From Macrostomum lignano (taxonomy: Eukaryota), in contig NIVC01000024.1 of assembly GCA_002269645.1 (NCBI GenBank), positions 124,001-188,000 on the forward strand: a stretch of 64,000 nt of DNA. Reading direction: 5' to 3'. Both the position numbers and the translations under genes were made by a program. Below, piece after piece: positions 108 through 58,445 of this stretch (position 1 is the stretch's first letter; every line of letters starts with the position of its first letter). Under the pieces are notes generated by a model. It did no database searches. It was not told where the DNA came from and saw nothing but the letters and a program-made list of their open reading frames with translations.

Positions 108-633
108 TCGTCACTGACAGTCAATCGTCACTGACAGTCAATTGTCACTGACAGTCAAATTGTCACTGACAGTCAATTGTCACTGACAGTCAAATTGTCA
201 CTGACAGTCAAATTGTCACTGACAGTCAATTGTCACTGACAGTCAATTGTCACTGACAGTCAATTGTCACTGACAGTCAATTGTCACTGACAGTCAATTG
301 TCACTGACAGTCAAATTGTCACTGACAGTCAATTGTCACTGACAGTCAAATTGTCACTGACAGTCAAATTGTCACTGACAGTCAATTGTCACTGACAGTC
401 AATTGTCACTGACAGTCAAATTGTCACTGACAGTCAAATTGGTACTGACAGTCAAATTGTCACTGACAGTCAATTGTCACTGACAGTCAAATTGTCAGAC
501 AGTCAATTGTCACTGACAGTCAATTGTCACTGACAGTCAATTGTCACTGACAGTCAATTGTCACTGACAGTCAATTGTCACTGACAGTCAAATTGTCACT
601 GACAGTCAAATTGTCACTGACAGTCAAATTGTC
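88..633 (+). repeat. 17-18 bp minisatellite (CAATTGTCACTGACAGT)
   Basis: About 30 tandem units; internally quasi-palindromic (TGTCA-C-TGACA, CAATTG). The same unit lies in opposite orientation at 25680-26746 and as a single copy at ~4752. Confidence 0.97.
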
Positions 634-3600
634 AAGCCGCCGGTCAGTCAGCACTCGATAATAGCCGGTAGCCGAGTCAGACTCAGCCATGCTGCACAGC
701 TGCACAGACTCCAAGGCCTGGCAGCCAATGTCACAGCCGCGGTCGGCAGCCAGACAGTCCGCATTTAGCCGGCACAGTCGCTGCTGACCTCGGGGCAGAC
801 GGCTGCACTTTGCCACTGTCAGGTGGGGCTTCCAGACGGAGCCGGGCTGCCGATCGGCTTCCACTTTCAGGCCGGCGTCAACGAATGACGTCATCAACTG
901 GTTGCGAGCACGCCGAAGCCAGGCCAGGGCCGGGTTCTCCACTAGAGGCACAAACAGGACACGCCGGTTGAAGGAATCGACGCCGAGGAACTGCAGCTCG
1001 AGGCCGGGCGCTTGCGCGGCGACTGAGTTCAACGAATTCTGCAGGGTCTGCTTGGCTCTGCAATTGGATTGGATGGGAGAGAGTGACTGACTGCGGTGGG
1101 ACTGTAGCTGGAATTTGTTGCTAATCTTATTAAGAACGGGTCCATGAGAAAAAATTGAGAACGGGTCCATGAGAACAGATTGATAACGGGTCCATGAGAA
1201 CAGATTGAGAACGGGTCCATGAGAACAGATTGAGAACGGGTCCATGAGAACAGATTGAGAACGGGTCCATGAGAACAGATTGATAACGGGTCCATGAGAA
1301 CAGATTGAGAACAGGTCCATGAGAACAGATTGAGAACGGGTCCATGAGAACAGATTGATAACGGGTCCATGAGAACAGATTGATAACGGGTCCATGAGAA
1401 CAGATTGAGAGCGGGTCCATGAGAACAGATTGAGAGCGGGTCCATGAGAACAGATTGAGAGCGGGTCCATGAGAACAGATTGAGAGCGGGTCCATGAGAA
1501 CAGATTGAGAACGGGTCTATGAGAACAGATTGAGAGCGGGTCCATGAGAACAGATTGAGAGCGGGTCCATGAGAACAGATTGAGAGCGGGTCCATGAGAA
1601 CAGATTGAGAGCGGGTCCATGAGAACAGATTGAGAGCGGGTCCATGAGAACAGATTGAGAGCGGGTCCATGAGAACAGATTGAGAGCGGGTCCATGAGAA
1701 CAGATTGAGAGCGGGTCCATGAGAACAGATTGAGAACGGGTCCATGAGAACAGATTGAGAACGGGTCCATGAGAAAAGATTGAGAACAAGTTCATGAGAA
1801 CTGATGAGAACAAGTTCATGAGAATCAATGAGAACAAGTTCATGAGAATCAATGAGAACAAGTTCATGAGAATCAATGAGAACAAGTTCATGAGAATCAA
1901 TGAGAACAAGTTCATGAGAATCAATGAGAACAAGTTCATGAGAATCAATGAGAACAAGTTCATGAGAACTGACGAGAACAAGTTCATGAGAATCAATGAG
2001 AACAAGTTCATGAGAATCAATGAGAACAAGTTCATGAGAATCAATGAGAACAAGTTCATGAGAACTGATGAGAACAAGTTCATGAGAATTAATGAGAACA
2101 AGTTCATGAGAATCAATGAGAACAAGTTCATGAGAATCAATGAGAACAAGTTCATGAGAACTGATGAGAACAAGTTCATGAGAATCAATTAGAACAAGTT
2201 CATGAGAATCAATGAGAACAATTTCATGAGAATCAATGAGAACAAGTTCATGAGAATCAATGAGAACAAGTTCATGAGAATCAATGAGAACAAGTTCATG
2301 AGAATCAATGAGAACAAGTTCATGAGAACTGACGAGAACAAGTTCATGAGAATCAATGAGAACAAGTTCATGAGAATCAATGAGAACAAGTTCATGAGAA
2401 TCAATGAGAACAAGTTCATGAGAACTGATGAGAACAAGTTCATGAGAATCAATGAGAACAAGTTCATGAGAATCAATGAGAACAAGTTCATGAGAATCAA
2501 TGAGAACAAGTTCATGAGAATCAATGAGAACAAGTTCATGAGAATCAATGAGAACAAGTTCATGAGAACTGATGAGAACAAGTTCATGAGAATCAATGAG
2601 AACAAGTTCATGAGAATCAATGAGAACAAGTTCATGAGAACTGATGAGAACAAGTTCATGAGAATCGATGAGAACAAGTTCATGAGAATCAATGAGAACA
2701 AGTTCATGAGAACTGATGAGAACAAGTTCATGAGAATCGATGAGAACAAGTTCATGAGAATCAATGAGAACAAGTTCATGAGAACCGATGAGAACAAGTT
2801 CATGAGAACTGATGAGAACAAGTTCATGAGAACTGATGAGAACAAGTTCATGAGAACTGATGAGAAAAGGAACAGATTGAAAAACGAAAGATAAAGAATA
2901 TTTGACTATTTTATAGGCAAGCGGCGGGCCTCACAGTTCAACATCAGCTTCCTTAGCCAGGGTGCACACAAACAAAGTCACGTGCAACTTGCTGGCCGGA
3001 ACCGCAGCCCGCTTCATAGCCGGATTGGCGTCGATAAACTGCTGCTGCAGCTGGGCAAAATTTGACCGGGTCTGTCGCGGAAAATAAAAAAATGTTTGAG
3101 ATGAATGCAGACAGTGTCTACTGGAAGTAGGAGCACGGGATAAAGCATGATTTTGTATTTCATATACTTCTCTTGAAGTAACTGACTGACTGACTGACTG
3201 ACTGACTGACTGACTGACTGACTGACTGACTGACTGACTTGAGTGACTGACTGACTGACTGACTGACTGACGGATTAACTAACTAACTATGCATCTATCT
3301 AATTAACTAACTAAATAATTACTATTTAAATAACATTATTTAGCTAGATACTACTTAGCAAACTACTAACTTGAAAATTAGTGCCCTAATCCTCCTGCTT
3401 CTAGTAGTGATGAAAAGAAATGTTAATACTTTATTATTTGATAGTCTGCATAATTACCTCCTTGTTGGTGACCTGCATGGCCAGGAAGTGGGTGGGTCTT
3501 GACTGCGATTGCTTCTTTTTCTTCTGAGCAGTTGCTGCCGCAGCTGCTTTGCTGTAGCGCCGGAGCATGTAGGCGCACTGTTGAAGGTTAAAGGAAGATG

Positions 3601-8600: not shown

Positions 8601-11600
8601 TGTCGCCGATTTTGACATCCATCGAGTGTCATCAAGACGCTCGTCGATTACCAGCGACTCTGGCAAGGGGCAGCATCAGCAGCGAGGCTCAACAACAGGA
8701 TCCATGCAGATGACATCATCGCCTTTGCCGTCGCCAATTGTCATGAGTGCAAGGCTAGAGCACAGGGTAAACAAACTATGTACCGTTTATCACAAATACT
8801 AATTTAAATACTATTACTAATTTAAATACTAACATATATGTTAGTATTCTAAACTTAATTTTGAAAGTTAAGAGCTACGTGTAAAACTTGCAAATGTATT
8901 CGCAAAAAAACCAATGTGCACATTTGAAAAATCAACAAGGTTACCGATATTTCTAAAAGTTCGGTTCACTGGTTATTTATCGATTTATGACTCCACATAC
9001 TGAACATTTGTTGGATGGTCTACTGATAGTAGAAATAGAAGGAAAATACGTTAAAAAGAGTCCATGCAATGTCGAATGCAAGTACTGTCCTTACTAAACC
9101 AATAGTTTTAGTCCCTTACACAACAATTAAAATAGACTTTGTTTCTAAATAAACAGGAGTCGCGACGAGGCATCATGGATGACTTCTGCAGCTATGAGAC
9201 TCGAGTACGCGATGCAGCAGCCATGACTGATAGCGTTTGTATCATGAGCGAAGAGGAGCTCTTTGAACAGCGGATTCAGCTGCAAGAGGCCAGACGTCTG
9301 CTAATTCAAATGGAGACGAAAAAAGCGCAAACCTGTGAAGCTTCCAGCCACACGATGACCGACAGCACAGACTTTGCAGCCAAAGAACAAAAGAGCGTTC
9401 GATTTTCCTTGGACTCGCTGCCAGCGAAGCCCAGGGGTGACGTTATCGATTCTGGTTGTCGTGGTGATTTAAGCATAGAAACTAGCTGGGTAAATATCAA
9501 CAAGGTCTCAGAACAGCGCTTAGTTGTCTGCAGGACTGACGCTCAGGTCATAGCGGCAACTAACGCTAGTAGAGAAGTCGCTGTTAAGGAAAGCAGCCTG
9601 GAATTTAGGGAGCCTTCAAAACCACAGGCAACGGCAGGAGTGAGTATCAGTCCTTCGATAGTTGACTCAGGGGCAAGTCTGGAACCGAAAGAGGTGAAAA
9701 CAGCGAGTGTAGTTATCACACCAGAGAAGCCGCCGATCAAAGATACCTACGCCAGTCGATCAATCACCTGGGGCGACAGCTCCGTCATCTTTCGAGAGAC
9801 GCCTAAGACGATGAAAACAGCGAGTGTAGTTATCACACCGGAGAAGCCGTCGATCAAAGATACCTACGCCAGTCGATCAATCACCTGGGGCGACAGCTTC
9901 GTCATCTTTCGAGAGACGCCTAAGACGATGAAAACAGCGAGTGTAGTTATCACACCAGAGAAGCCGCCGATCAAAGATACCTGTGCCAGTCGATCAATCA
10001 CCTGGGGCGACAGCTCCGTCATCTTTCGAGAGACGCCTAAGACGATGAAAACAGCGAGTTTAGTTATCACACCGGAGAAGCCGCCGATCAAAGATACCTG
10101 TGCCAGTCGATCAATCACCTGGGGTGACAGCTCCGTCATCTTTCGAGAGACGCCTAAGGCGATGAAAACAGCGAGTGTAGTTATCACACCGGAGAAGCCG
10201 CCGATCAAAGATACCTGTGCCAGTCGATCAATCACCTGGGGTGACAGCTCCGTCATCTTTCGAGAGACGCCTAAGACGATGAAAACAGCGAGTGTAGTTA
10301 TCACACCGGAGAAGCCGCCGATCAAGGATACCTGTGCCAGTCGATCAATCACCTGGGGTGACAGCTCCGTCATCTTTCGAGAGACGCCTAAGGCGATGAA
10401 AACAGCGAGTGTAGTTATCACACCGGAGAAGCCGCCGATCAAGGATACCTGTGCCAGTCAATCAATCGACTGGGGCGACAGCTCAGTTAAAATTGGCAAA
10501 GATTTATTTTACTCCCACGTGAACTTCCATGCGGATTCAACTTACGCAAGCGTATTCTTCAGACAAGAACGACCAGCTGTAACAAACACGTTCGCCAGCA
10601 AGGTCTTGGAACACGTTACTCAATCCACCAGTGCTAAGATTGAGCACATGGCTGGCAGCTGCCGGGCAACTGTGGCCATGGTAACACATCCCGGGGTAAA
10701 ATTCAGTCCAGAATTGATTAGCAACGGCATGAAGTCGCTTGGGAAGCCAATAGTTGACAATGGTGTATTCAGGATTAACGAGATGATCGACTCCTGGACT
10801 GACATGCCGATCAAAAGTGAGTTTCGCTGCCAGAATTATATTTAATGTGCAGCTCTGACATCTGGAACAGGATATGACGAAACGTATTACCTAACTCCCA
10901 GAATCATCGATTGGCATGCTGTGACTGCATAACAGACTTTCCTACTAGTCACTAAACACGCATTGCCCGTTGTGCTGCACAACTTGTGCATTTGACATGC
11001 ATACTGCGTCAAAAGTTAAGCTCGTGTGAAATTTTAATATACGCGCCATGCAATTCCAGAGCCTGCAGAGAGCGGGGCGCACTGCACCGTGACTCGACGC
11101 GACGCGCGCACACAGAAAAACGCAACAAGGCCGCCGCAGGTGGAGTGCGGCGTCGGCGCTAATCTAGACGACTCCGACAGGCATCAACCGGTGCGACCAG
11201 TGGAGGCCGCATCTGTACAGACGACTCAATCCGGTCGCACTGTGGAGTGCGGCGCCATTGGTACCGCTGATGGAGGCGGTAAGAACGACAAGCAAAGAAA
11301 AACCCGCGGCACAGACATGGCCGACAGGCACACAATTTGCGATACGGGTGTCTGCGCCAGCACTAAGCAGGTTGCTAAAATTCAGGTCAGTAGGCTTGAA
11401 CAACTCATTTTTGGCAATCAAGATGTTTGTGAAATTCAAAATGCAAGACTCAATAACCAGAGATAAAGAAAAGTGATACAGGTCTTACAAGTTACACGCT
11501 ACAAGTTACAAGCTGATTAGTGACAAGCTACAAGTTACAAGTAATTGAGTTTCACGAGCCAACTTGTGAATTTTTAGTCTAAAAGTTAAAAGTCGCCTAC

Positions 11601-17831: not shown

Positions 17832-19200
17832 ATGGAAACATCAAAAGACAGTGTTCGCTTCTATATCTTTATGCGCATGCAACTTGGTTGCAAAGTGACT
17901 GAGACTCACACCGATCTGGTGAATGTTTTAGCTGACTCTGCTCCATCATTTGACACGGTTGCCCGCTGGCTGCGCCATTTCTTGGAAGGCTGGGACAGCT
18001 TCAACGATGAACCAAGGTCTGGCCGACCCCGGACATCCGTGACCGAAGATGTTGTGGCCCATGCCGATGCAATAATTCGTGAGGATTGGAGCATTATGCT
18101 GAGATTCCTTGCTTATGAGCTTGGTGTCAGCTATGGAAGTGCTCATAACATCATGCATGAGCAACTGGACCGCACAAAGACCTGCGCTCGGTGGGTACCC
18201 CATCTTCTCACTCCGGAGCAGCAAGCAGAGAGGGTGCGCATCTGTCGCTTGTGGCTGCAAATGTTTGAGCCCCACGGCCCACGAAAACTGTCGGATGTCA
18301 TCACAGGAGACGAATGTTGGATCTCCTTCTTTACCATGAAGGATAAGCAGTCCAACATGGTCTGGCTGGCAGAAGATGAGCCAAGGCCTGAGGTGCTGAA
18401 AACCGGATTCCGCAGTCCGAAGCGGATGTTCACCATTTTTTTCAACTCTCAGGGTGTTGTAGCGGTGAAAATCCTTCCAGCGGGTGCCACAGTGACTGCC
18501 AGGTACTACACAGACACTGTTCTGCCAGGCGTGCTGCAGGAGCGGCAGGAACGTGCGCGAACCAGGCATGGACCTCGACTCCTATTGCACCATGACAATG
18601 TGGCACCGCACAGAGCGGCATCAACCATGGCGTACCTGGAGCAGCAGGGGTCCGGCTGATGCCCCATCCACCCTACTCTCCAGACCTAGCACCTTCCGAC
18701 TTTTGGCTGTTCCCGAGGATCAAATCCGTCGTTTCTGGCCCGCATAGCAAAATTACGTATCCAATAGAAAGTGGGACGTCTCCAATACGTAACTTTTTTG
18801 GTTGCAGGAACGTCTTTGATACGTATCCAATTTTTATGATCCTCTAAAGAAACTCGTTTCTACAAAAATGGTGGAATAAATAATCAATAAAATTACAAGC
18901 ATTATCTGTTCACCATTTTTGTTGAAACGAGTTTCTTTAGAGGATCATAAAAATTGGATACGTATCAAAGACGTTCCTGCAACCAAAAAAGTTACGTATT
19001 GGAGACGTCCCACTTTCTATTGGATACGTAATTTTGCTATGCGGGTGGGAGGCCGTTTTCACGCATACAAGACCTTGCCCAAGCGGTACATTCAGCTCTA
19101 CAGGGTATACCAACTTCGGTACCATGACTGCTTTCAGACATGGTGCACACGGATGCGACGGTGCATGGATAGTGGTGGAAAGTACTTTGAGGGAATGTGA
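17832..19200 (+). pseudogene. Mariner transposase with two frameshifts and a MITE insertion
   Basis: WVPHLL, TGDECW, HHDN and YSPDLAPSDF motifs with D34D spacing; frameshifts near 18650 and ~19120; C-terminus RCMDSGGKYFE. Confidence 0.92.
18739..19045. mobile_element. 307-bp hairpin MITE with CCC...GGG ends and 3-bp TSD
   Basis: ~130-bp near-perfect inverted repeats; TGG duplicated at 18736-38 and 19046-48; removal restores KSVVSGRPFSR of the transposase. Confidence 0.92.
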
Positions 19201-21383: not shown

Positions 21384-22112
21384 TCAAACCAGGCCAAACT
21401 TGACCCAGTCGGCGCTCGTCTCGATCTCCGCCTCCACCTGAGCGTCGGTGAACAGCAGCAGGCGACAGGCTCTCAGCTTGCTGTTGTACAGCACGTGTCT
21501 GCAGCTGGCGTCACTCATAGCGGCTGCAACGCACTCAACAGCGCTGCTCACATGCGGCACATCGGTGAAGCAGTACTCAGTGTTGTAGATGGCTCTCTTG
21601 AACGACACCTTCTTCCAATTGGCGAGCTTCCGGTAAGCAGAGGGGTCCTTGTACTCGCAAGCGAATCCATAGTTACGCTTGCAATAGATGTCCCTGAGTT
21701 TTCCAAGTTTGTTCATCCGAATGCAGTTTTCATCAGCAAGTCCTGATGGTTCGTTTGTGAGAAACAGACTCTCAGGACTGGCGATGCCGTTTCCGTTGAC
21801 CCTCTGCCAGCCGTCTCTCTTCTCGCCTCTCTCATCGGCCAGGTCGCTCAGTCCGAGCCACAGCTCGCAGCCGCAGGATGAGCTGATGCCGCTGCGATTC
21901 AGTGCCAGGATGGAGCTGTGCGAGTTGAGCAGCTCGCCTCCGATCGATGCGCACTGCCGATTGGCTGAGCACCAGCTGTGGCTGTGAGCTGTGCTCACGA
22001 ACAGGCACAGACCGGCCTGCATGGTGAACGGTGCGGGACACGGCAGGGCCTGCGACTGCAGCAGCTGGCAGCTCAGCAGCAGCAGCAAGCAAACAGCACT
22101 CTTCGAGATCAT
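21384..22112 (-). CDS. Secreted C-type lectin domain + PAN/apple-like domain protein (copy A)
   Basis: Intronless, 242 aa from ATG 22112; signal peptide; CTLD motifs W-SANRQC, LWLGL, EPS, NC..D..C..NYGFACE; C-terminal EC---C/CRHVLYN/CRL domain. Confidence 0.9.
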   Translation of the reverse strand: MISKSAVCLLLLLSCQLLQSQALPCPAPFTMQAGLCLFVSTAHSHSWCSANRQCASIGGELLNSHSSILALNRSGISSSCGCELWLGLSDLADERGEKRDGWQRVNGNGIASPESLFLTNEPSGLADENCIRMNKLGKLRDIYCKRNYGFACEYKDPSAYRKLANWKKVSFKRAIYNTEYCFTDVPHVSSAVECVAAAMSDASCRHVLYNSKLRACRLLLFTDAQVEAEIETSADWVKFGLV

Positions 22113-23206
22113 TTTTCTATCATTTGTCTGGAGCAATTTGCAAGCTGCACCTGCGCCAAGTTTATACTCGTCAATCGTGTTTGCTTTTTGTAGCCATCCC
22201 GGCTATTAACTGATGCATTTTGATGACCCTTGTGGTGTACAGTTTTTACCCAATCGCAGGTAAAAGCCTACTTAATTGTCATGTGATTTGTCGCGATGTT
22301 TTTTTCCATTAGCTTTTGTTTGGCTAGAATCTTGAGTGGCTTGCAAGGTCTTATGGTCCTGACCCAGTAAAAAATAGGATAAGTTTGGAGTCTGCTAATG
22401 GCTGCAGCAGTGGGGCCCTTCATACGTTGATTCGGCATCTCGGTAGCAACTTTTCTGCTTGCACTTGGATTTGTACAATAGTAGACAATGCTTGTGTAGT
22501 TTAAAACGCCCTTGATGACCAACCCACAAGGCACAGTGAAGTGTACATGCCTAAACGACTAATAGAGTCCTGTGTGACTGCGTACGTATCCGCGCGCTTG
22601 CGTGCCTGCTCAGGGGAGTCGGCGAGATGGACAGTATAGTGCCTCTCACCGGTTGTGTGACAATGCAGCTTTCCCTTAAAGTGCGCCAGGGTGCACACAG
22701 GACCCTTGCCTTAAATAAAAAAATATGGTTCCCTAACGGCCTCCAGCTCATTTCTAAGAAAATGTACCTAATGTACCTAAGACCGTGGCTTCGTTAAAAG
22801 GATTGCATGATTTAGGAAGTCATAATTAAAAATGTGTGGGAGAAAAATCCATGGTTTCGCCTCGCTTCACAATACACAGACAGGTGCATGTCATTAGTGA
22901 TGTCGCAGCAGAAGTGCCGGCATAGCGCCTGCCCAGCTCAATGCAGAATATTTATAGAGAGACGAGTACAGGACCCAAAGAATGAGTTGGGATTTTTCCA
23001 TAGATGCAATATTCAATGATTATTAGTTGAGTTTCAGGTTCGTGAGAAACAGCTTGAGAATAAAAACCTGTTGCTGATTGACGTCAGCCATTGAATGCAG
23101 TTATTTAGTTAAATACTCCTTATAGAGATATGAGAATTGCATGCACCGAAGCTCCGAATTGATCACAGGCATCAAAACTAGCACCAGTATAGTAAAAAAA
23201 CGATTC

Positions 23207-23944
23207 ATGAAGTACAGCGAGGCTCGTTATATAGTGCTGCTGCTGAGCTGCCAGCTGCTGCAGTTGCAGGCCCTGCTGTGTCCCGCACCGTTCACCATGC
23301 AGGCCGGTCTGTGCCTGTTCGTGAGCACAGCTCACAGCCACAGCTGGTGCTCAGCCAATCGGCAGTGCGCATCGATCGGAGGCGAGCTCGTCAACTCGCA
23401 CAGCTCCATCCAGCTGTTTCGGAGTGCCAGCATCCCCGGCGCCAGCTGCAGCTGCAACCTGTGGGTCGGGCTGAGCGACTTTGCAAACGAGAGAAACCGG
23501 AGCAGAGACGGCTGGCAGAGGGTCAACGGAAACGGCATCTTCCCGGAGGATGGCAGCCTTTTTAGTGGCGCTCAACCAACCGGCGGGCTCAACTCCGACT
23601 GCCTCCGACTGCACAATGGCAGGTACTTGGCTGACTTTCCCTGCACGGTGAACTACGGGTTCGCCTGCGAGTTCGTGGGAGACTCCCGACCGCCGACTGA
23701 CGGCGTCTGGACGGCCGCCGCCTTCAAGCGCGAGAGCCTCAACTCCGAGTACTGCTTCACCGATGTGCCGAATGTGAGCAGCGCTGTTGAGTGCGTTGCA
23801 GCCGCTATGAGTGACGCCAGCTGCAGACACGTGCTGTACAACAGCAAGCTGAGAGCCTGTCGCCTGCTGCTGTTCACCGACGCTCAGGTGGAGGCGGAGA
23901 TCGAGACGAGCGCCGACTGGGTCAAGCTTGACCTTTTAAATTAG
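23207..23944 (+). CDS. Secreted C-type lectin domain + PAN/apple-like domain protein (copy B)
   Basis: Intronless, 245 aa from ATG 23207; same architecture as copy A, with QPT at the EPN/QPD-equivalent position. Confidence 0.9.
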   Translation: MKYSEARYIVLLLSCQLLQLQALLCPAPFTMQAGLCLFVSTAHSHSWCSANRQCASIGGELVNSHSSIQLFRSASIPGASCSCNLWVGLSDFANERNRSRDGWQRVNGNGIFPEDGSLFSGAQPTGGLNSDCLRLHNGRYLADFPCTVNYGFACEFVGDSRPPTDGVWTAAAFKRESLNSEYCFTDVPNVSSAVECVAAAMSDASCRHVLYNSKLRACRLLLFTDAQVEAEIETSADWVKLDLLN

Positions 23945-25395: not shown

Positions 25396-28035
25396 TTAGA
25401 AACTTCCAAAAGCCTCCCAGACCATAGCAACAGCAGCGGCCGCTGATCCGCAGGCGGCTAGCCAAGCAAGTTTCGAGTCCGGACCTCCAGTTGTTCTGTT
25501 GCACAGATCCACAGAGCAGAAGCAGTACTCAGCACTGTAGCCGACAGGATTTTTAACCATTCTGCAGCCGTCGGAGTCATCCAACCATGTGCTACGGTTG
25601 AAAGCTATGCTGTCCTCAACTGTGTAACAGATTCGCAGCACCGTGTGCACGTAGGCGCCGATTTCTGAAAGTGTAGTCTTTGACTGTCAGTGGCAATGAC
25701 TCTCAGTGACATTTGACTGTCAGTGACAATTTGACTGTCAGTGACAATTGACTGTCAGTGACAATTGACTGTCAGCAGTGACAATTGACTGTCAGTGACA
25801 ATTTGACTGTCAGTGACAATTGACTGTCAGTGACAATTGACTGTCAGCAGTGACAATTGACTGTCAGTGGCAATGACTCTCAGTGACATTTGACTGTCAG
25901 TGACAATTTGACTGTCAGTGACAATTGACTGTCAGTGACAATTGACTGTCAGCAGTGACAATTGAGTGTCAGTGACAATTTGACTGTCAGTGACAATTGA
26001 CTGTCAGTGAAATTGACTGTCAGTGACAATTGACTGTCAGTGACAATTGACTGTCAATGACAATTGACTGTCAGTGACAATTGACTGTCAGTGACAATTG
26101 AATCTCAGTGACAATTGACTGTCAGTGAAATTGACTGTCAGTGACAATTGACTGTCAGTGACATTTGACTGTCAGTGACAATTGACCGTCAGTGACAATT
26201 GACTGTCAGTGACAATTTGACTGTCAGTGACAATTTGACTGTCAGTGACAATTGACTGTCAGTGACAATTGACTGTCAGTGACAATTGACTGTCAGTGAC
26301 AATTGACTGTCAGTGACAATTGACTGTCAGTGAAATTGACTGTCAGTGACAATTGACTGTCAGTGACAATTGAATCTCAGTGACAATTGACTGTCAGTGA
26401 CAATTGACTCACAGTGACAATTGACTGTCAGTGACAATTGACTGTCAGTGACAATTGACTGTCAGTGACAATTGACTGTCAGTGACAACTGACTGTCAGT
26501 GACAATTGAATCTCAGTGACAATTGACTGTCAGTGACAATTGACTCACAGTGACAATTGACTGTCAGTGACAATTGACTGTCAGTGACAATTGAATCTCA
26601 GTGACAATTGACTCACAGTGACTTTTGACTCACAGTGACTTTTGACTGTCAGTGACAATTGACTGTCAGTGACAATTTGACTATCAGTGATATTTGTCTC
26701 TTAATGACATTGACTGTCAGTGACAATGGACTGTCAGTGACAATTGGAGGACCTCATCTATTAAAAGAGCGAATTAATTAATTAAAGTTTTCATACTACT
26801 ACAAAAGTCAGTAGTTTAAGAGTATGAAAAATCGCGGTAATTCAAATTCAAACAATTGTACCACGCACAGTAACTCTCATCAACTCACCCCGCGAGTACT
26901 GGACCTGGGTCTGTCTGGCGCATTTTCCAGCGCCCCGAGGCATCGTGCAGGTGCTGCGACCGGCGATGGCGATGCACTTGAACAGCGACACGCCTGGCAG
27001 GTAGGAGGCCCGGCACTGGTGGCACGTCAGGGTGTCATTGTCTAGGCCGCAGTGGTGGGGGTTTAAAATGCTCGTTATAACACATGCAAACTCTGAGTTA
27101 TAGTTTCTTATGTATAAAGAGGATTGTGATCTTTGAGGATTGTGAATTGCTAAGAAGTCAAAGGCGATCATGGTGAAATTCTTAGGCTCAGAAAGAATTC
27201 ATGAAATGTTAAGGTTCATAGGGACAATTGCTGAAATGCTGTGGCTCATGGAGGATTTCTGAAGTTCTGTGGCTCATGCAATGCTCATGGGAAATTGCTG
27301 ATAAGTCAAGACTCAGGAGGAATTGCTGAAATGCTGCGGCTCTCGGCAGGGTAATGGTTCAATTATGAAATGAAAGACAAATGGGTGAATCGCTGAGATG
27401 TCAAGGCTCATAGAGGAGTTGCCGAAATGCTCTGGCTTATGTGGGTTGCTCAGATGCTTTGAGCCAAAGCTCATAGGCTAGATATAGTTGGCTTTCCGAG
27501 TGGGTGCTTTTTATAGTGACTGCACGAGCTACATGTACAAGGGCAAAACCATGATGTAGTTTATGAAAAAAATCTTTCCTTTCTTAATTGCGGCCTCCCC
27601 GACGGGGGGCGCAGGTTGCTAGTCCACTATACTAAAAATGATTTGTCTCTATCTATAGGTAGGTATCGTGTGTGGTTAATTTTTTAATCTAAGAATGGAT
27701 ATGACTGCATGCCTTCCTGGTTCAGGGTCGACTAATTACTAAAGCTATAATTTGAGATAAAATTATGCTTTTATGCTATACAGGAATGCGCCACTCAGAA
27801 AGGCGAAGTCTTAAATATTATTTGTTAATTTAAATGAGCCACCTAGTTGAATTCCGAAATCACCTGCAATCAGATCGCTTCCGAACTGGTGCTTTGACGA
27901 TTTTTGCACGTTCGAGGCGGCCGGCGTCAGCCGCCCAGGGTCCTCGGCTGTGCAGCAAGTCAAACCGATTAGTAGGGCCTGCAGAAGCAGCAACAGCAAT
28001 AACGGAGACAGATTGCTTCCGGTTGGTGAAGACAT
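25396..28035 (-). CDS. Ly6/uPAR three-finger (quiver/sleepless-like) GPI-anchored protein
   Basis: Exons 28035-27864, 27041-26889, 25664-25396 (phases 1/1); signal peptide, TCHQC, CFCSVDLCN and a hydrophobic C-terminal GPI-type tail. Confidence 0.85.
25680..26746 (-). repeat. 17-18 bp minisatellite (same family as 88-633) filling Ly6 intron 2
   Basis: About 60 units of GACTGTCAGTGACAATT. Confidence 0.97.
27170..27670 (+). mobile_element. Helitron-family remnant with 3'-end/5'-end junction
   Basis: Decayed AATTGCTGA..GGCTCA repeats (same family as 5920-6345, inverted), then CCCCGACGGGGGGCGCAGGTTGCTAG (to 27622) joined directly to TCCACTATACTAAAAATGA. Confidence 0.72.
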
Positions 28036-52900: not shown

Positions 52901-55900
52901 CTATCATGTCAAACACAAAAGAGCTACCATGTCAAACATAGAAGAGCTACCATGTCAAACATTAAAGAGCCACCTTTTTAAACAAAAAAGAGACCCCATT
53001 TCAAACATAAAAGAAGTGTCATGCCAAACAAAATGGAACCATTATAAAGCTAAGGAAATTGTTGCACTAGCTACTTGTTCTCTGGTGGATGCTTGCTTTT
53101 TAAGGATGGATACTTGCTTACAGGGGGATGCTTGCTCTTGTGGGTGGAGGGTACTTGCTATCTGAGAGGGGGTTGCTAGATATCTATAAGGTATCTTTGT
53201 ATCCAGGTTATGCTTGCTATCAGGGGTTGCTTGCGAACTGGGGGATGCTTGCAATCTGGGGGATGCTTGCGAACTGGGGGATGCTTGCAATCTGGGGGAT
53301 GCTTGCGAACTGGGGGATGCTTGCTACCTGGGGGATGCTTGCTACCTGGGGGATGCTTGCTACCTGGGGGATGCTTGCAGTCTGGGGGATGCTTGCTATT
53401 TGGGGATCGATGCTTGAATGCTGTCTGAGGATGCTTGCTGTCTTGGGATGTTTTGTTTTTAGAGGGAATGTCTGTTGTTGTTTTTTGAAGGTTTTATTTC
53501 GCTGTCTATTTGTTATTTGTAAAGAACAAGGATTCTATCCAGATGTCCCCCATCGGGGGGCGAAGATTGCTAGTTGTGACTATGAATGAGTGACATTGTG
53601 ACTGTGGTGGCTGAGTGACATTGTGACTGTGGTGGCCGAGTGACATTGCGACTGTGGTGGCCGAGTGACATTGCGACTGTGGTGGCCGAGTGACATTGTG
53701 ACTGTGGTGGCTGAGTGACATTGTGACTGTGGTAGCTGAGTGACATTGTGACTGTGGTGGCTGAGTGACATTGTGACTGTGGTGGCTGAGTGACATTGTG
53801 ACTGTGGTGGCTGAGTGACATTGTGACTGTGGTGGCCGAGTGACATTGCGACTGTGGTGGCCGAGTGACATTGCGACTGTGGTGGCCGAGTGACATTGTG
53901 ACTGTGGTGGCTGAGTGACATTGTGACTGTGGTAGCTGAGTGACATTGTGACTGTGGTGGCTGAGTGACATTGTGACTGTGGTGGCTGAGTGACATTGTG
54001 ACTGTGGTGGCTGAGTGACATTGTGACTGTTGTGGCTGAGTGACATTGTGACTGTGGTGGCTGAGTGACATTGTGACTGTTGTGGCTGAGTGACATTGTG
54101 ACTGTGGTGGCTGAGTGACATTGTGACTGTGGTGGCTGAGTGACATTGTGACTGTGGTGGCTGAGTGACATTGTGACTGTGGTGGCTGAGTGACATTGTG
54201 ACTGTGGTGGCTGAGTGACATTGTGACTGGCTGAGTGACATTGTGACTGTGGTGGCTGAGTGACATTGTGACTGTGGTGGCTGAGTGACATTGTGACTGT
54301 GGTGGCTGAGTGACATTGTGACTGTGGTGGCTGAGTGACATTGTGACTGGCTGAGTGACATTGACTACAAGTAACACGATAACGGAAAGTTCCGAGCGAC
54401 ACTATCAATATACTCGTAGAAATGGCCGAACGATAAAAGAAACTCACTCATTTCCAGCCTTGGCCGAATCGCCCTTGGCAGGCGCAGCCTCTTCTCCTTC
54501 ATCGTCTTCAGCCTCCTCCCCATCCTGCGGCTCTCCATTTTCGTCTCCATCTTCATCTTCGTCGCTCTCCAGATTCGCTTTGGATTCGGCGGCGGCCGCC
54601 GGAGCGCCCGAATCTGGCGTGGCCTCGTCCGTTTTCTTCCGTCTGGCCGCCTGCGACGCCTGCGAAGCCGCCGGGGCCGGCGAGCCGCGGCAGCAGTAGA
54701 CGATAAGCAGAACGGCAGGCAAGGCGATCACCATGAGCAGCACCGCCCAGATCCACGGCCGGTCCTTCGTAGCATCGCGAACGGCGTCCACCACCGACTG
54801 GGCGCCAGGGTCGGCCAGCCGCTCGGCCTCCCGCTTAACCGTCCAGGTCTGCTCGGCGAAATCGTCGGCCAGCGATTTGCGATCGACAATTAGCAGATTG
54901 TCGAAAACGACGCCGTCGTTCATCGACCAGAGCTCGAAGCCGATGGCGCCGATCGGGGCGAAGCGCCAGGGCTCTTTGTCCTCGAAATAGTCGGGATTGG
55001 GGATCACCCGCGGCTTCCAGATGCCCTTGTAGGCCGGGTTGTCAATCATTGGGGCCGACCACTTGCCCTTGTACTTCGGATTCTTCACCTTCGGCCGGGT
55101 CCACGGGCCGCAGCCTGGCGCCTCCTTGCACCTGGTTTTGGAGAATGATTTTCGGATGATTATTGGAATGATTTCCGGATGATTATTGGAATGATTCCCA
55201 GATGATTATTAAAATGATTTCCAGATGATTATTGGAATGATTTCCGGATGATTATTGGAATGATTCCCAGATGATTATTAAAATGATTTCCAGATGATTA
55301 TTGGAATGATTTCCGGATGATTATTGGAATGATTTCCAGGCATTTACAGGAATGATTTCCAGACGATCACAGGAATGATTTCCAGAATATCACAGGAATG
55401 ATTTCCAGACAATCACAGGAATGATTTTTGGCAATCACAGAAATGATTTTCAGACAATCACAGAAATGATTTTTGGCAATCACAGGAATGATTTCCAGGC
55501 AATCAGGAATGATTTCCAGACAATCACAGGAATGACTTCCAGACAATCACAGGAATGATTTTTGGCAATCACAGAAATGATTTTCAGACAATCACAGAAA
55601 TGATTTCCAGACAATCACAGGAATGATTTCCAGACAATCAAAGAAATGATTTCCAGACAATCACAGGAATTATTTCTTAGCAATCACAGAAATGATTTTC
55701 AGACAATCACAGAAATGATTTCCAGACAATCACAGGAATGATTTCCAGACAATCAAAGAAATGATTTCCAGACAATCACAGGAATTATTTCTTAGCAATC
55801 ACAGAAATGATTTTCAGACAATCACAGAAATACATTTGTAGTTTGCAGATGATTATTGGAATGCTTCAGAATAAAAAAAAACAGACAAAGCCTCACTTGG

Positions 55901-58445
55901 GATTGTCAACCTGCGCCGGCTCCCAGGACCCGTCCATATCCTCGTCCCAGTCCTTGGGCTTCTCGGCCTTGGGATCCGGGACGGTCAGCGGCTCGTCAAC
56001 CAGCCAGCCCTGCGGCATGACGGCCTCGGCGTCTTCGATAAACTCCGGCTGAGTCTCGTCCCAGTCGTCCGGCTTAACGGCTTTGGGATCGGGGATTTTC
56101 TCGCGCTCGTCCCAGTCGGCCGGCTTTTTGTCGTTAGGATCGTCAATCTCTTTAGGCGGGTTCACCGGCGGCTGCATGTCCTCTAGGAGACTGCCGCTGT
56201 TCACCAGGCTCCTGTCAACGTACACCTCGAAGCTATTGTCCGAGTTCAGCACCAGAGTGTACAGGTGAGTCCGCTTGTCGTTAAAGTACGAATCCAAATC
56301 AGCTTTGGGCTTTTTGGCGTGCTTCTCTTCGATTTTGCCAGACTTCGGATTCTTGTGCCGCAGAATGAAGTGCAGCTTGTGGTCCATGCCGCACTTGTCA
56401 GGCCCGAACATGATGGTGTACGGAGTCTTGTCGTTGAACTCCTGCGGGGGTTGAAGGAGCGGCATGTTCGGCTTGGGGTGTGCAGTGGCATCGCATTGGG
56501 TTGCTGGGTCACTCAGTGACACCCGCTACCCTCCCTCAGTGATAGCCGCTACCCTCCCTCAGTGACAGCAGCTACCCTCCTTCAGTGACAGCCGCTACCC
56601 TCCCTCAGTGACAGCCGCTACCCTCCCTCAGTTGAGAGTCGCTACCCTCCCTCAGTGACAGCCGCTACCCTTCCTCAGTGACAGCCGCTACCCTCCCTCA
56701 GTGACAGTAGCTACCCTCCCCCAGTGACTGCCACTACCCTCCCTCAGTGACAGCCGCTACCCTCCCTCAGTGACAGCCGCTACCCTCCCTCAGTGACAGC
56801 CGCTACCCTCCCTCAGTGACAGCCGCTACCCTCCCTCAGTGACAGCCGCTACCCTCCCTCAGTTGAGAGTCGCTACCCTCCCTCAGTGACAGCCGCTACC
56901 CTCCCTTAGTGACAGCCGCTACCCTCCCTCAGTGACCGCCACTACCCTCCCTCAGTGACCGCCACTACCCTCCCTCAGTGACAGCCGCTACCCTCCCTCA
57001 GTGACAGCCGCTACCCTCCCTCAGTGACAGCCGCTACCCTCCCTCAGTGACCGCCACTACCCTCCCTCAGTGACAGCCGCTACCCTCCCTCAGTGACAGC
57101 CGCTACCCTCCCTCAGTGACAGCCGCTACCCTCCCTCAGTGAGAGCCGCTAACCTCCCTCAGTGACAGCCGCTACCCTCCCTCAGTGACAGCCGCTACCC
57201 TCCCTCAGTGAGAGCCGCTACCCTCCCCCAGTGACTGCCACTACCCTCCCTCAGTGACAGCCGCTACCCTCCCTCAGTGAGAGCCGCTAACCTCCCTCAT
57301 TGACAGCCGCTACCCTCCCCCAGTGACTGCCACTACCCTCCCTCAGTGACAGCCGCTACCCTTCCTCAGTGACAGCCGCTACCCTCCCTCAGTGAGAGCC
57401 GCTACCCTCCCCCAGTGACTGCCACTACCCTCCCTCAGTGACAGCCGCTACCCTCCCTCAGTGAGAGCCGCTAACCTCCCTCATTGACAGCCGCTACCCT
57501 CCCTCAGTGACAGCCGCTACCCTCCCTCAGTGACAGCCGCTACCCTCTCTCAGTGACAGTCGCTACCCTCCCTCAGTGAGAGCCGCTACCCTCCCCCAGT
57601 GACTGCCACTACCCTCCCTCAGTGACAGCCGCTACCCTCCTTCAGTGAGAGCCGCTAACCTCCCTCATTGACAGCCGCTACCCTCCCTCAGTGACAGCCG
57701 CTACCCTCCCTCAGTGACAGCCGCTACCCTCTCTCAGTGACAGTCGCTACACTCCCTCAGTGACAGCCGCTACCCTCCCTCAGTGAGAGCCGCTACCCTC
57801 CCTCAGTGACCACCGCTACCCTCCCCCAATGACAGCCGCTACCCTCCTTAGTGACAACATAGAAGCAAGCCACAAAAGAGCACTGAGTGAATGCCAACCA
57901 ACCTTCAGATCCATCCCGGGCCCATCAGTCAGCAGTTTAACATAGGCTCCGCCGCAATCCATGCCGTTCTGAAACTTCACTTCGTATTGCATGACAAACT
58001 GCTTGCCGGGCTGGTCAAAGGCGAAAGGCTTAGCCAGCTTAGCGGATACGGCGTGGTGTTTGGCTTTGGATTTGAGCACCAAAGCAAAGTCGGCATCAAT
58101 GGCGCTAGACTCGGGCACTTCAACGGACCAGAAGCCGTCGTATTTGGACAAATCTGAGTCTACGCCTTCCTTCTTAGACTTGGACAGCACCAGCTGTTCA
58201 GCTAGATTCGATGGCGCAGTAAAGAATTGAGCATAATAGGAACCAGCTGGAACCTTTGGCGGCGTGAACACCGGCTTAGCAGGCGGGGCTGTCGCGTCTC
58301 CACCGGCTTTATCGTCGGCCGGGTCGTCTTCGTCGGAGACGTCTGCTTCAGCGTCTGGTGGGCTGGCATCCTCTGCACCAGCTGCCCATTCAGTGGCCAG
58401 CAGCAGTAGCAGGGCTAGGAGCAGCAATTTCATACTGTGAGGCAT
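49948..58445 (-). CDS. CANX: Calnexin
   Basis: Exons 58445-57903, 56441-55897, 55131-54448, 49987-49948 (phases 0/2/2, 603 aa); signal peptide, [19 protein letters not shown]-domain KPEDWD/GIWKP repeats, TM helix, acidic tail, C-terminus [10 protein letters not shown]. Confidence 0.97.
50045..50188 (+). repeat. 25-bp minisatellite (GAGTGACATTGTGACTGTGGTGGCT), left part
   Basis: Continues at 53574-54363 after the Helitron insertion. Confidence 0.9.
50683..50750 (+). pseudogene. tRNA-like segment inside Helitron (second copy 60183-60250)
   Basis: A-box-like TAGCC, loop TGCTAA (GCT anticodon-like) and B-box GGTTCGAATC; no complete acceptor stem. Confidence 0.55.
50815..53030 (+). repeat. ~23-bp minisatellite (AAACATAAAAGAGCCACCATGTC) inside Helitron copy 1
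   Basis: About 95 variant units. Confidence 0.96.
53200..53445 (-). repeat. 18-bp minisatellite (GATGCTTGCTA[C/T]CTGGGG) inside Helitron copy 1
   Basis: About 12 units. Confidence 0.93.
53574..54363 (+). repeat. 25-bp minisatellite, right part
   Basis: About 31 units. Confidence 0.97.
55140..55830 (+). repeat. 23-bp minisatellite filling calnexin intron 2 (GAATGATTTCCAGACAATCACAG)
   Basis: About 30 units reaching within ~10 nt of the acceptor at 55132. Confidence 0.96.
56515..57850 (+). repeat. 23-bp minisatellite filling calnexin intron 1 (CAGTGACAGCCGCTACCCTCCCT)
   Basis: About 58 units. Confidence 0.97.

Follow-up and report, generated by a model that had tools for sequence, protein, structure and literature searches.

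A head-to-head pair of C-type lectin genes in the flatworm Macrostomum lignano with near-identical and diverged segments, probably produced by gene conversion

Examples of conversion between inverted gene copies include the Drosophila Hsp70Aa/Ab pair and the palindromes of the human Y chromosome. Gene conversion between inverted duplicates, or between the arms of a palindrome, is a classic phenomenon (PMC3924832, PMC3403216). For C-type lectin-like genes, homogenization that is restricted to particular segments has been documented for KLRC/NKG2, KLRA/Ly49, and KLRB, and has been called "merohomogenization" (Fossum et al., 2011; PMC3210942). Here, we describe two head-to-head genes, A and B, that encode small proteins with a C-type lectin-like domain (CTLD) and a PAN-like domain. 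The pair lies in a stretch of 64,000 nucleotides (nt) from the flatworm Macrostomum lignano (M. lignano; assembly GCA_002269645.1, contig NIVC01000024.1, positions 124,001–188,000 of the forward strand), which we refer to as the window, and all coordinates are those of the window. The two coding sequences are a mosaic of almost identical and strongly diverged segments, and this mosaic is probably due to gene conversion between the inverted copies.

The locus resembles each of these systems in part. As in the natural killer receptor KLR genes, A and B are clustered CTLD paralogues in which homogenization is partial, the remainder is anciently diverged, and trees built from different segments differ. 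However, the KLR genes homogenize the ligand-binding CTLD and keep their signalling parts distinct, whereas A and B homogenize the framework and the PAN-like domain and keep the long-loop half of the CTLD distinct. In addition, the KLR genes contain introns and encode vertebrate type II membrane receptors, while A and B are inverted, intronless, and encode flatworm proteins that are predicted to be secreted. The likeness to Hsp70Aa/Ab and the Y palindromes lies in the close spacing of inverted paralogues, the near-identity at silent sites, and what would be non-reciprocal exchange within a chromosome. In contrast to those arms, which are homogenized over their full length, A and B are homogenized in patches, namely three short tracts in a 730-bp coding sequence, from which the flanks are excluded. 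A further parallel is offered by the Sp185/333 (SpTransformer) genes of sea urchins, which also encode small secreted proteins, are mosaics of "elements," and have had recombination or conversion invoked to explain them (PMC3342357, PMC5103432). That family comprises ~50 genes in tight clusters, shows many element patterns, and is flanked by microsatellites that have been implicated in instability; unlike it, A and B amount to two local copies and one related database protein, and many patterns are not in evidence.

Layout of the gene pair and its segments

Judging from the open reading frame (ORF) list and its translations, both genes are complete and intronless. Gene A (21384–22112, minus strand) encodes 242 amino acids (aa) plus a stop codon, and comprises a signal peptide, the CTLD, and the PAN-like domain. 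Gene B (23207–23944, plus strand) has the same architecture and encodes 245 aa plus a stop codon. Its start was placed at the ATG at 23207, which leaves the hydrophobic leader at the N-terminus; an in-frame ATG further upstream, at 23141, would bury the leader. An AATAAA motif is found ~120 nt past the stop codon of gene A and ~125 nt past that of gene B. The genes are separated by a divergent-promoter spacer of 1094 bp (22113–23206) that consists of unique sequence with a GC content of 43%. The two halves of the spacer had no similarity to each other when compared by blastn in the inverted sense, and a comparison of the spacer with the whole window gave chance matches only. The 3′ flanks of A and B had no detectable similarity to each other either, and no wider palindrome was found to surround the pair, the sole other inverted repeat being a 135-nt hairpin beside a mariner ORF. 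A preliminary description of this DNA, made from its letters and an ORF list, had reported two intronless head-to-head genes ~1.1 kb apart whose signal peptide starts and untranslated regions (UTRs) differ, and it was correct on both counts: in addition to the dissimilar 3′ flanks, the leader codons (1–9) of the two genes have a nucleotide identity of just 44%.

Inverted repeats were taken from a repeat finder, and the identity of each segment from a codon alignment of A and B. The repeat finder returned all three of the near-identical blocks that had been described earlier, and these blocks have nucleotide identities of 97–100% in the alignment. The first inverted pair (21908–22084 and 23235–23411) is 177 nt long and 98% complementary. 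The second (21391–21602 and 23723–23934) is 212 nt long and 94% complementary, and has a core (21399–21578 and 23747–23926) in which 179/180 positions match. The third (21783–21876 and 23446–23539) is 94 nt long and 83% complementary, and contains a perfect island of 36 nt (21783–21818 and 23504–23539; 36/36 positions) that encodes RDGWQRVNGNGI.

On this basis, we divided the coding sequences into segments, which run on the minus strand in gene A and on the plus strand in gene B. Synonymous and non-synonymous divergence (dS and dN) and the proportion of synonymous differences (pS) were obtained for each segment by the method of Nei and Gojobori. The leader is followed by the first constant block, const1 (A, 21908–22084; B, 23235–23411), which spans codons 10–68 of both genes and encodes the core of the signal peptide, β0–β1, α1, and the start of α2; its nucleotide identity is 97% and its dS is 0.023. 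Next is var1 (A, 21819–21907, residues 69–98; B, 23412–23503, residues 69–99), which covers α2 and β2, and in which nucleotide identity drops to 61%, with a dS of 0.61 and a dN/dS of 0.86. The 3′ part of var1 in gene A still matches gene B at ~83% identity, and seems to be the decayed remnant of an older exchange. The island, which carries the GW.W..G motif, is identical in the two genes, and leads into var2 (A, 21579–21782, residues 111–178; B, 23540–23746, residues 112–180). This segment encodes the long loop with the triplet EPS (21744–21752) in A or QPT (23573–23581) in B, β3, β4 with LRD in A and LAD in B in place of WND, β5, and the linker to the PAN-like domain. It is 48% identical in nucleotides and saturated at synonymous sites (pS 0.73, dS 2.7, dN/dS 0.26). 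Const3 (A, 21399–21578, residues 179–238; B, 23747–23926, residues 181–240) comprises essentially the entire PAN-like domain, and is 99% identical, with 0 synonymous differences between A and B. Finally, identity falls to 58% in the tail. At the protein level, the identity of var1 is 43% and that of var2 is 34%, in keeping with the earlier statement that the intervening segments are less than about half identical. Six real differences between A and B remain inside the constant blocks.

Silent sites, segment trees, and gene conversion

The strongest evidence on the origin of the mosaic comes from its synonymous sites. The three constant blocks together have a dS of 0.011 (1 synonymous difference in ~91 synonymous sites), versus a dS of 1.39 (~42 in 66) for the two variable segments together, and this contrast has a p value of 7e-20 by Fisher's exact test. 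Likewise, codons that specify the same amino acid in A and B are identical in 125/126 cases in the constant blocks, as against 23/36 in the variable segments. The longest perfect runs between the two genes measure 155 and 111 nt; when the 167 mismatches were shuffled 100,000 times over the 726 aligned sites, no run was ever longer than 68 nt.

A three-way codon comparison was then made with L001, the gene of an independent relative on an ENA contig, which is ~52% identical. In var1 and var2, the pS between A and B (0.42 and 0.73, respectively) is similar to the values obtained for A or B against L001 (0.44–0.70). In const1 and const3, by contrast, pS is 0.03 and 0.00 between A and B, but 0.29–0.42 when either gene is compared with L001. 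The synonymous sites of the constant blocks are therefore free to change, and it is between A and B alone that they are identical.

The closest database protein, P0001 (M. lignano A0A1I8H0J8), is 86% identical to A and was compared at the level of protein. A shares 26/30 residues of var1 and 52/68 residues of var2 with P0001, as against 13/30 and 23/68 with B. Over the 131 residues of the constant blocks, A differs from B at 5 and from P0001 at 9. The trees disagree by type of block: those of the constant blocks place A with B, and those of the variable segments place A with P0001. P0001 also has the B-type "NRS" patch immediately 5′ of the island, and mixes A and B states at the few constant-block sites where A and B differ; repeated exchange with shifting tract ends would produce exactly this. 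As to polymorphism shared by the paralogues, these mixed states give no more than a hint.

The mosaic, the synonymous contrast, and the disagreement between the trees can be read directly from the sequences. Because of the contrast at silent sites, and because A, B, and the third relative are equidistant in the variable segments, we favor an old duplication with recent, segment-restricted conversion. The incongruence of the trees, which is the standard signature of interlocus gene conversion, leads to the same inference. In our view, conversion between the inverted copies is likely to be the best explanation of the mosaic. The preliminary description had proposed a patchwork, akin to the framework and complementarity-determining regions of antibodies, that is maintained by gene conversion, and had called for dN/dS by segment. 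The latter values are given above (0.86 for var1 and 0.26 for var2). The synonymous contrast and the trees back the conversion half of that proposal; its notion of "binding cassettes" is not supported, as discussed below.

We envisage that a gene coding for a small secreted CTLD-PAN protein would have been duplicated long ago, in tandem and in inverted (head-to-head) orientation, to give A and B. The copies would have diverged in the distant past, which would account for the state of the UTRs, the promoters, the first 9 and last 4–5 codons, and the two internal segments that are saturated at synonymous sites. Later, non-reciprocal homologous exchange between the arms would have overwritten ~177 nt, 36 nt (within the older 94-nt tract), and ~180 nt. 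As for what limits the tracts, we infer that conversion may persist where residual similarity permits heteroduplex formation and where homogenization is harmless, in a pattern that would reinforce itself, and that it may be blocked or selected against in the diverged segment that holds the long loop, β3–β4, and the linker. The tracts coincide with parts that are conserved in the family, namely the N-terminal framework of the CTLD, the GW.W..G motif, and the PAN domain. Among 40 distant members, conservation in bits per column is 3.1 for the island, 2.8 for var1, 2.7 for const1, 2.6 for const3, and 2.1 for var2, so that the island (GW.W..G) is the most conserved and var2 the least conserved segment family-wide.

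Some observations weigh against gene conversion as we have described it. First, var1 is as conserved in the family (2.8 bits) as the constant blocks, so that a rule by which conserved segments are the converted ones is imperfect. Second, the GC content at third codon positions (GC3) of var2 in gene A is 0.59, compared with 0.80–0.85 in all other segments of A and in all of B; this deviation might reflect either a separate history of var2 in A or the absence of GC-biased conversion. Third, the comparison with P0001, which may be an orthologue, a homeologue, or a paralogue, is one of proteins; a look-up of P0001 in indexed public assemblies returned no record. Fourth, the near-perfect identity of the blocks could be partly inflated by polishing with cross-mapping reads. 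Fifth, the exact A and B proteins, in both their short and longest ORF versions, are not on record in indexed public assemblies.

Alternative explanations of the mosaic

The last two of these points bear upon the possibility of an assembly or polishing artefact, in which blocks that are only similar were made identical by cross-mapping reads or by local collapse. We regard such an artefact as unlikely. The genome is extremely rich in repeats, with 45 tandem-repeat rows in 64 kb, and the sharp edges of the blocks, like the absence of the exact A and B proteins from other indexed assemblies, are what an artefact might leave behind. However, cross-mapping requires true copies that are at least 90% alike, and the contrast with segments of 48–61% identity survives. 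The inference of conversion would thus stand even if polishing had raised the identity of the blocks from ~95% to ~99%, because they must have been very similar already. Furthermore, P0001, which is an independent M. lignano model, shares the constant-block peptides at 93–95% identity, the six differences persist inside the blocks, and a palindromic read chimera would yield arms that are uniformly identical rather than a mosaic.

It is also improbable that A and B arose by a recent duplication, after which the variable segments were altered by accelerated or diversifying selection, or were imported from dispersed third-party paralogues. Such a history would suit the dN/dS of 0.86 in var1 and the position of var2 over the ligand-binding half of the CTLD, and the low GC3 of var2 in A could suggest a foreign origin. 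Nevertheless, the synonymous sites of var2 are saturated (pS 0.73, with a dN/dS of 0.26), which selection on amino acids could not bring about. The UTRs, promoter, leader, and tail would have stayed similar after a recent duplication, yet none of them can be aligned. In addition, the variable segments of A are common to P0001 and hence are not a private recent import.

The preliminary description went further than gene conversion, and suggested that the locus is a candidate system for lectin diversification or switching. According to this idea, the inverted constant blocks serve as recombination sites, at which crossovers, in the germline or somatically, flip the DNA lying between them, with exchange of promoters, leaders, or binding cassettes. 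The geometry permits it: promoter and leader would change places after a crossover in const1, and a crossover in the 36-nt island would create new combinations of var1 and var2. Moreover, P0001 is a partial mosaic of A and B. However, what makes P0001 a mosaic is a conversion tract that extends 3 residues further, together with individual shared sites, and not a reassortment of var1 and var2. No inversion-type chimera was found, and P0001, the sole relative with mixed characters, resembles a conversion tract with a different end. Searches of the 64-kb window by blastn, by tblastn, and with the family hidden Markov model (HMM) on all six reading frames revealed no further copies, fragments, or silent cassettes. 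Nor is any recombinase tied to the pair; the closest ORF for an enzyme, ~2.7 kb from gene A, is that of a truncated mariner transposase. No dedicated recombination signals were seen, the inverted repeats being the coding blocks themselves, and a 41-nt piece of const3 had 0 matches in JGI metagenome contigs. At 155, 111, and 36 nt, the identical runs are too short for efficient crossover to be expected. Finally, binding specificity would be left untouched by swaps at const1 or const3, which would affect no more than the leader and promoter in the one case and the last 4–5 codons and the 3′ UTR in the other. Physically, a crossover between the arms could bring about inversion, which is purely conjectural at this locus; we consider a switching system to be very unlikely. 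The same low standing applies to a broader version, in which A and B and their homeologous or dispersed relatives (the P0001 locus, for example) would form a recombination-prone module where recurrent exchange in the constant blocks, germline or somatic, reassorts promoters, var1, and var2, and which we find highly improbable. If it were true, individual worms might carry their own repertoires of secreted CTLD-PAN proteins, as an invertebrate counterpart of "framework/CDR" diversification.

The remaining alternative, plain purifying selection on the protein or through an overlapping constraint at the nucleotide level, which had also been raised in the preliminary description, is scarcely credible: although the blocks are more conserved across the family, and the last ~40 residues are almost invariant even in 50%-identical relatives (P0004, L001), the pS of 0.29–0.42 between these blocks and L001 contradicts it by leaving their synonymous sites unconstrained, as does the proportion of identical codons for the same amino acid in the constant (125/126) and variable (23/36) parts.

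Domains, family, and surroundings of the pair

The domain architecture of A and B is likewise a matter of observation. The Pfam profile Lectin_C matches both proteins above its threshold of 22.6 bits (A, 24.7 bits; B, 26.1 bits), while matches to PAN_1 (A, residues 185–225, E = 0.003, 17.8 bits; B, E = 0.002, 18.5 bits) fall under the cut-off of 21.4 bits. An AlphaFold2 model of A, calculated from a family alignment of 44 sequences, had a mean per-residue confidence (pLDDT) of 83 and a predicted template modelling (TM) score of 0.80, and in it the PAN-like region forms a compact α/β domain (residues 182–241). When the model was compared with the PDB by Foldseek, the top matches were DC-SIGN, DC-SIGNR, MGL, and type II antifreeze protein (E ~5e-8; target-normalized TM score 0.74–0.84), and the N-terminal domain of A superposed on the carbohydrate-recognition domain (CRD) of DC-SIGN with a target-normalized TM score of 0.80–0.84. 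From the model and the alignment to DC-SIGN, var1 was mapped to α2/β2, and var2 to the long loop, β3–β5, and the linker. The preliminary description had spoken of swapped ligand-binding cassettes; this is not supported, as var1 is framework (α2 and β2), and var2, the only segment that covers the long-loop binding half, extends beyond that half of the CTLD to include β3–β5 and the interdomain linker.

The EPN triplet is found in DC-SIGN and mannose-binding protein, and QPD in the asialoglycoprotein receptor; under the known rule, EPN or QPD at this position sets mannose- or galactose-type binding, respectively. Two ligands of Ca2+ site 2, Asn and Asp, come from the WND motif on β4. A and B have the fold and the conserved cysteines of the CRDs of these three proteins. 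Unlike the canonical CRDs, they have Ser (A) or Thr (B) as the third residue of the triplet, where the rule requires Asn or Asp, they have LRD or LAD at the WND position, with the following Glu also replaced by Asp in B, and they are fused to a C-terminal PAN-like domain. Across the 44 family members, the triplet is EPG in 9, EPN in 7, EPS in 5, QPS in 5, and QPD in 0. The Trp or Asn of WND is present in 0/44, and its Asp is kept in 29/44. Since the WND Asn is absent from all 44 members, the canonical Ca2+ site 2 is incomplete across the family, and since the triplets of A and B are non-canonical as well, the EPN/QPD rule cannot be transferred. Therefore, of the earlier claim that EPS and QPT form a sugar-specificity triplet, the position is right, as both align with EPN of DC-SIGN, but the mannose/galactose switch is not supported. 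As for function, A and B probably encode secreted binding proteins in whose CTLD the canonical Ca2+/sugar site is incomplete, and these may bind some ligand, be it a glycan or not, with or without the help of Ca2+. We also considered whether A and B might act as co-expressed heterodimers, in the manner of Anopheles CTL4/CTLMA2 or the snaclecs of snakes, but dropped this idea as speculation for which the literature offered no usable support.

More than 50 proteins of the CTLD-PAN family were recovered. They are ~240 aa long, combine Lectin_C with PAN_1, are unannotated, and come mostly from unnamed contigs of public sequencing runs; the nearest relatives of the A and B lectins are M. lignano proteins. 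At E ≤ 0.01, Lectin_C matched 41/44 members and PAN_1 36/44 (best E value, 4.8e-7). Those members whose genomic context could be retrieved are intronless like A and B. They include the distant members L002–L006 (runs ERR14224704-06), which are single intronless genes on contigs of 1.4–5 kb, and no partner copy is visible beside them on these contigs. In some M. lignano database entries, P0004 (A0A1I8JSG6) and P0003/P0007, the CTLD-PAN protein is modelled as a fusion with a sodium/solute symporter or a globin, and these fusions are probably gene-model merges of closely packed genes. The last ~40 residues of these entries (CRHVLYNSKLRACRLLLFTDAQ.EAEIETSADWVKF) are almost identical to those of A and B, despite an identity of ~50% elsewhere. 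Literature searches on C-type lectins or gene conversion in Macrostomum led to adhesion proteins and an unrelated gut gene containing a CLECT domain, and did not turn up the CTLD-PAN family.

The remainder of the window holds several other features. A Mos1/mariner-type transposase ORF (17832–18659, plus strand; 275 aa) has an HTH_48 and a partial Transposase_1 domain, is apparently truncated, and is unrelated to the A/B pair. It is directly followed by the hairpin mentioned above (18739–18873 and 18911–19045), whose 135-nt arms are 99% complementary and enclose a 37-nt loop. A calnexin gene (54444–58445, minus strand) has at least three exons (57816–58445, 55893–56522, and 54444–55088), with matches to the Pfam Calreticulin profile at E values down to 3e-78. 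Its introns consist largely of 23-bp satellites (55143–55831 and 56512–57856), and its best named relative is a Schistosoma calnexin (59% identity), in agreement with a flatworm origin of the DNA. The window is extremely rich in tandem arrays with units of 17–42 bp (45 rows from Tandem Repeats Finder). One of these, a 17-bp satellite, CAATTGTCACTGACAGT, occurs at 88–634 and at 25680–26746 in opposite orientations, 25 kb apart and asymmetric about the lectin pair. The ORF at 9139–10845 (plus strand, 568 aa) contains a coding tandem repeat (9695–10484) with a unit of 117 bp (39 aa), present in 6.8 near-perfect copies, and its Pfam matches are spurious and due to low complexity. The ORF at 571–1200 (minus strand) encodes an AKAP7/2′-5′ RNA-ligase-like domain (Pfam AKAP7_NLS, E = 2e-16), and on its upstream side continues into a 24-bp satellite, which gives the false impression of a long ORF. 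Lastly, a small cysteine-rich ORF (25396–25650, minus strand), which matches Ly6/uPAR (QVR) weakly (E = 0.008) and has a hydrophobic C-terminus, may be the last exon of a glycosylphosphatidylinositol-anchored three-finger protein.

There are two cautions for annotation that follow from this locus. The EPN/QPD rule is unfit for CTLDs without WND, and near-identical coding blocks in repeat-rich assemblies call for confirmation at the level of reads. Our literature searches found no prior report of such conversion in macrostomid flatworms. The locus opens no new mechanism, and is a clean, ordinary case of patchy concerted evolution; as such, it provides a compact example of segment-restricted gene conversion, with a ~100-fold contrast in dS within an intronless coding sequence of 730 bp.

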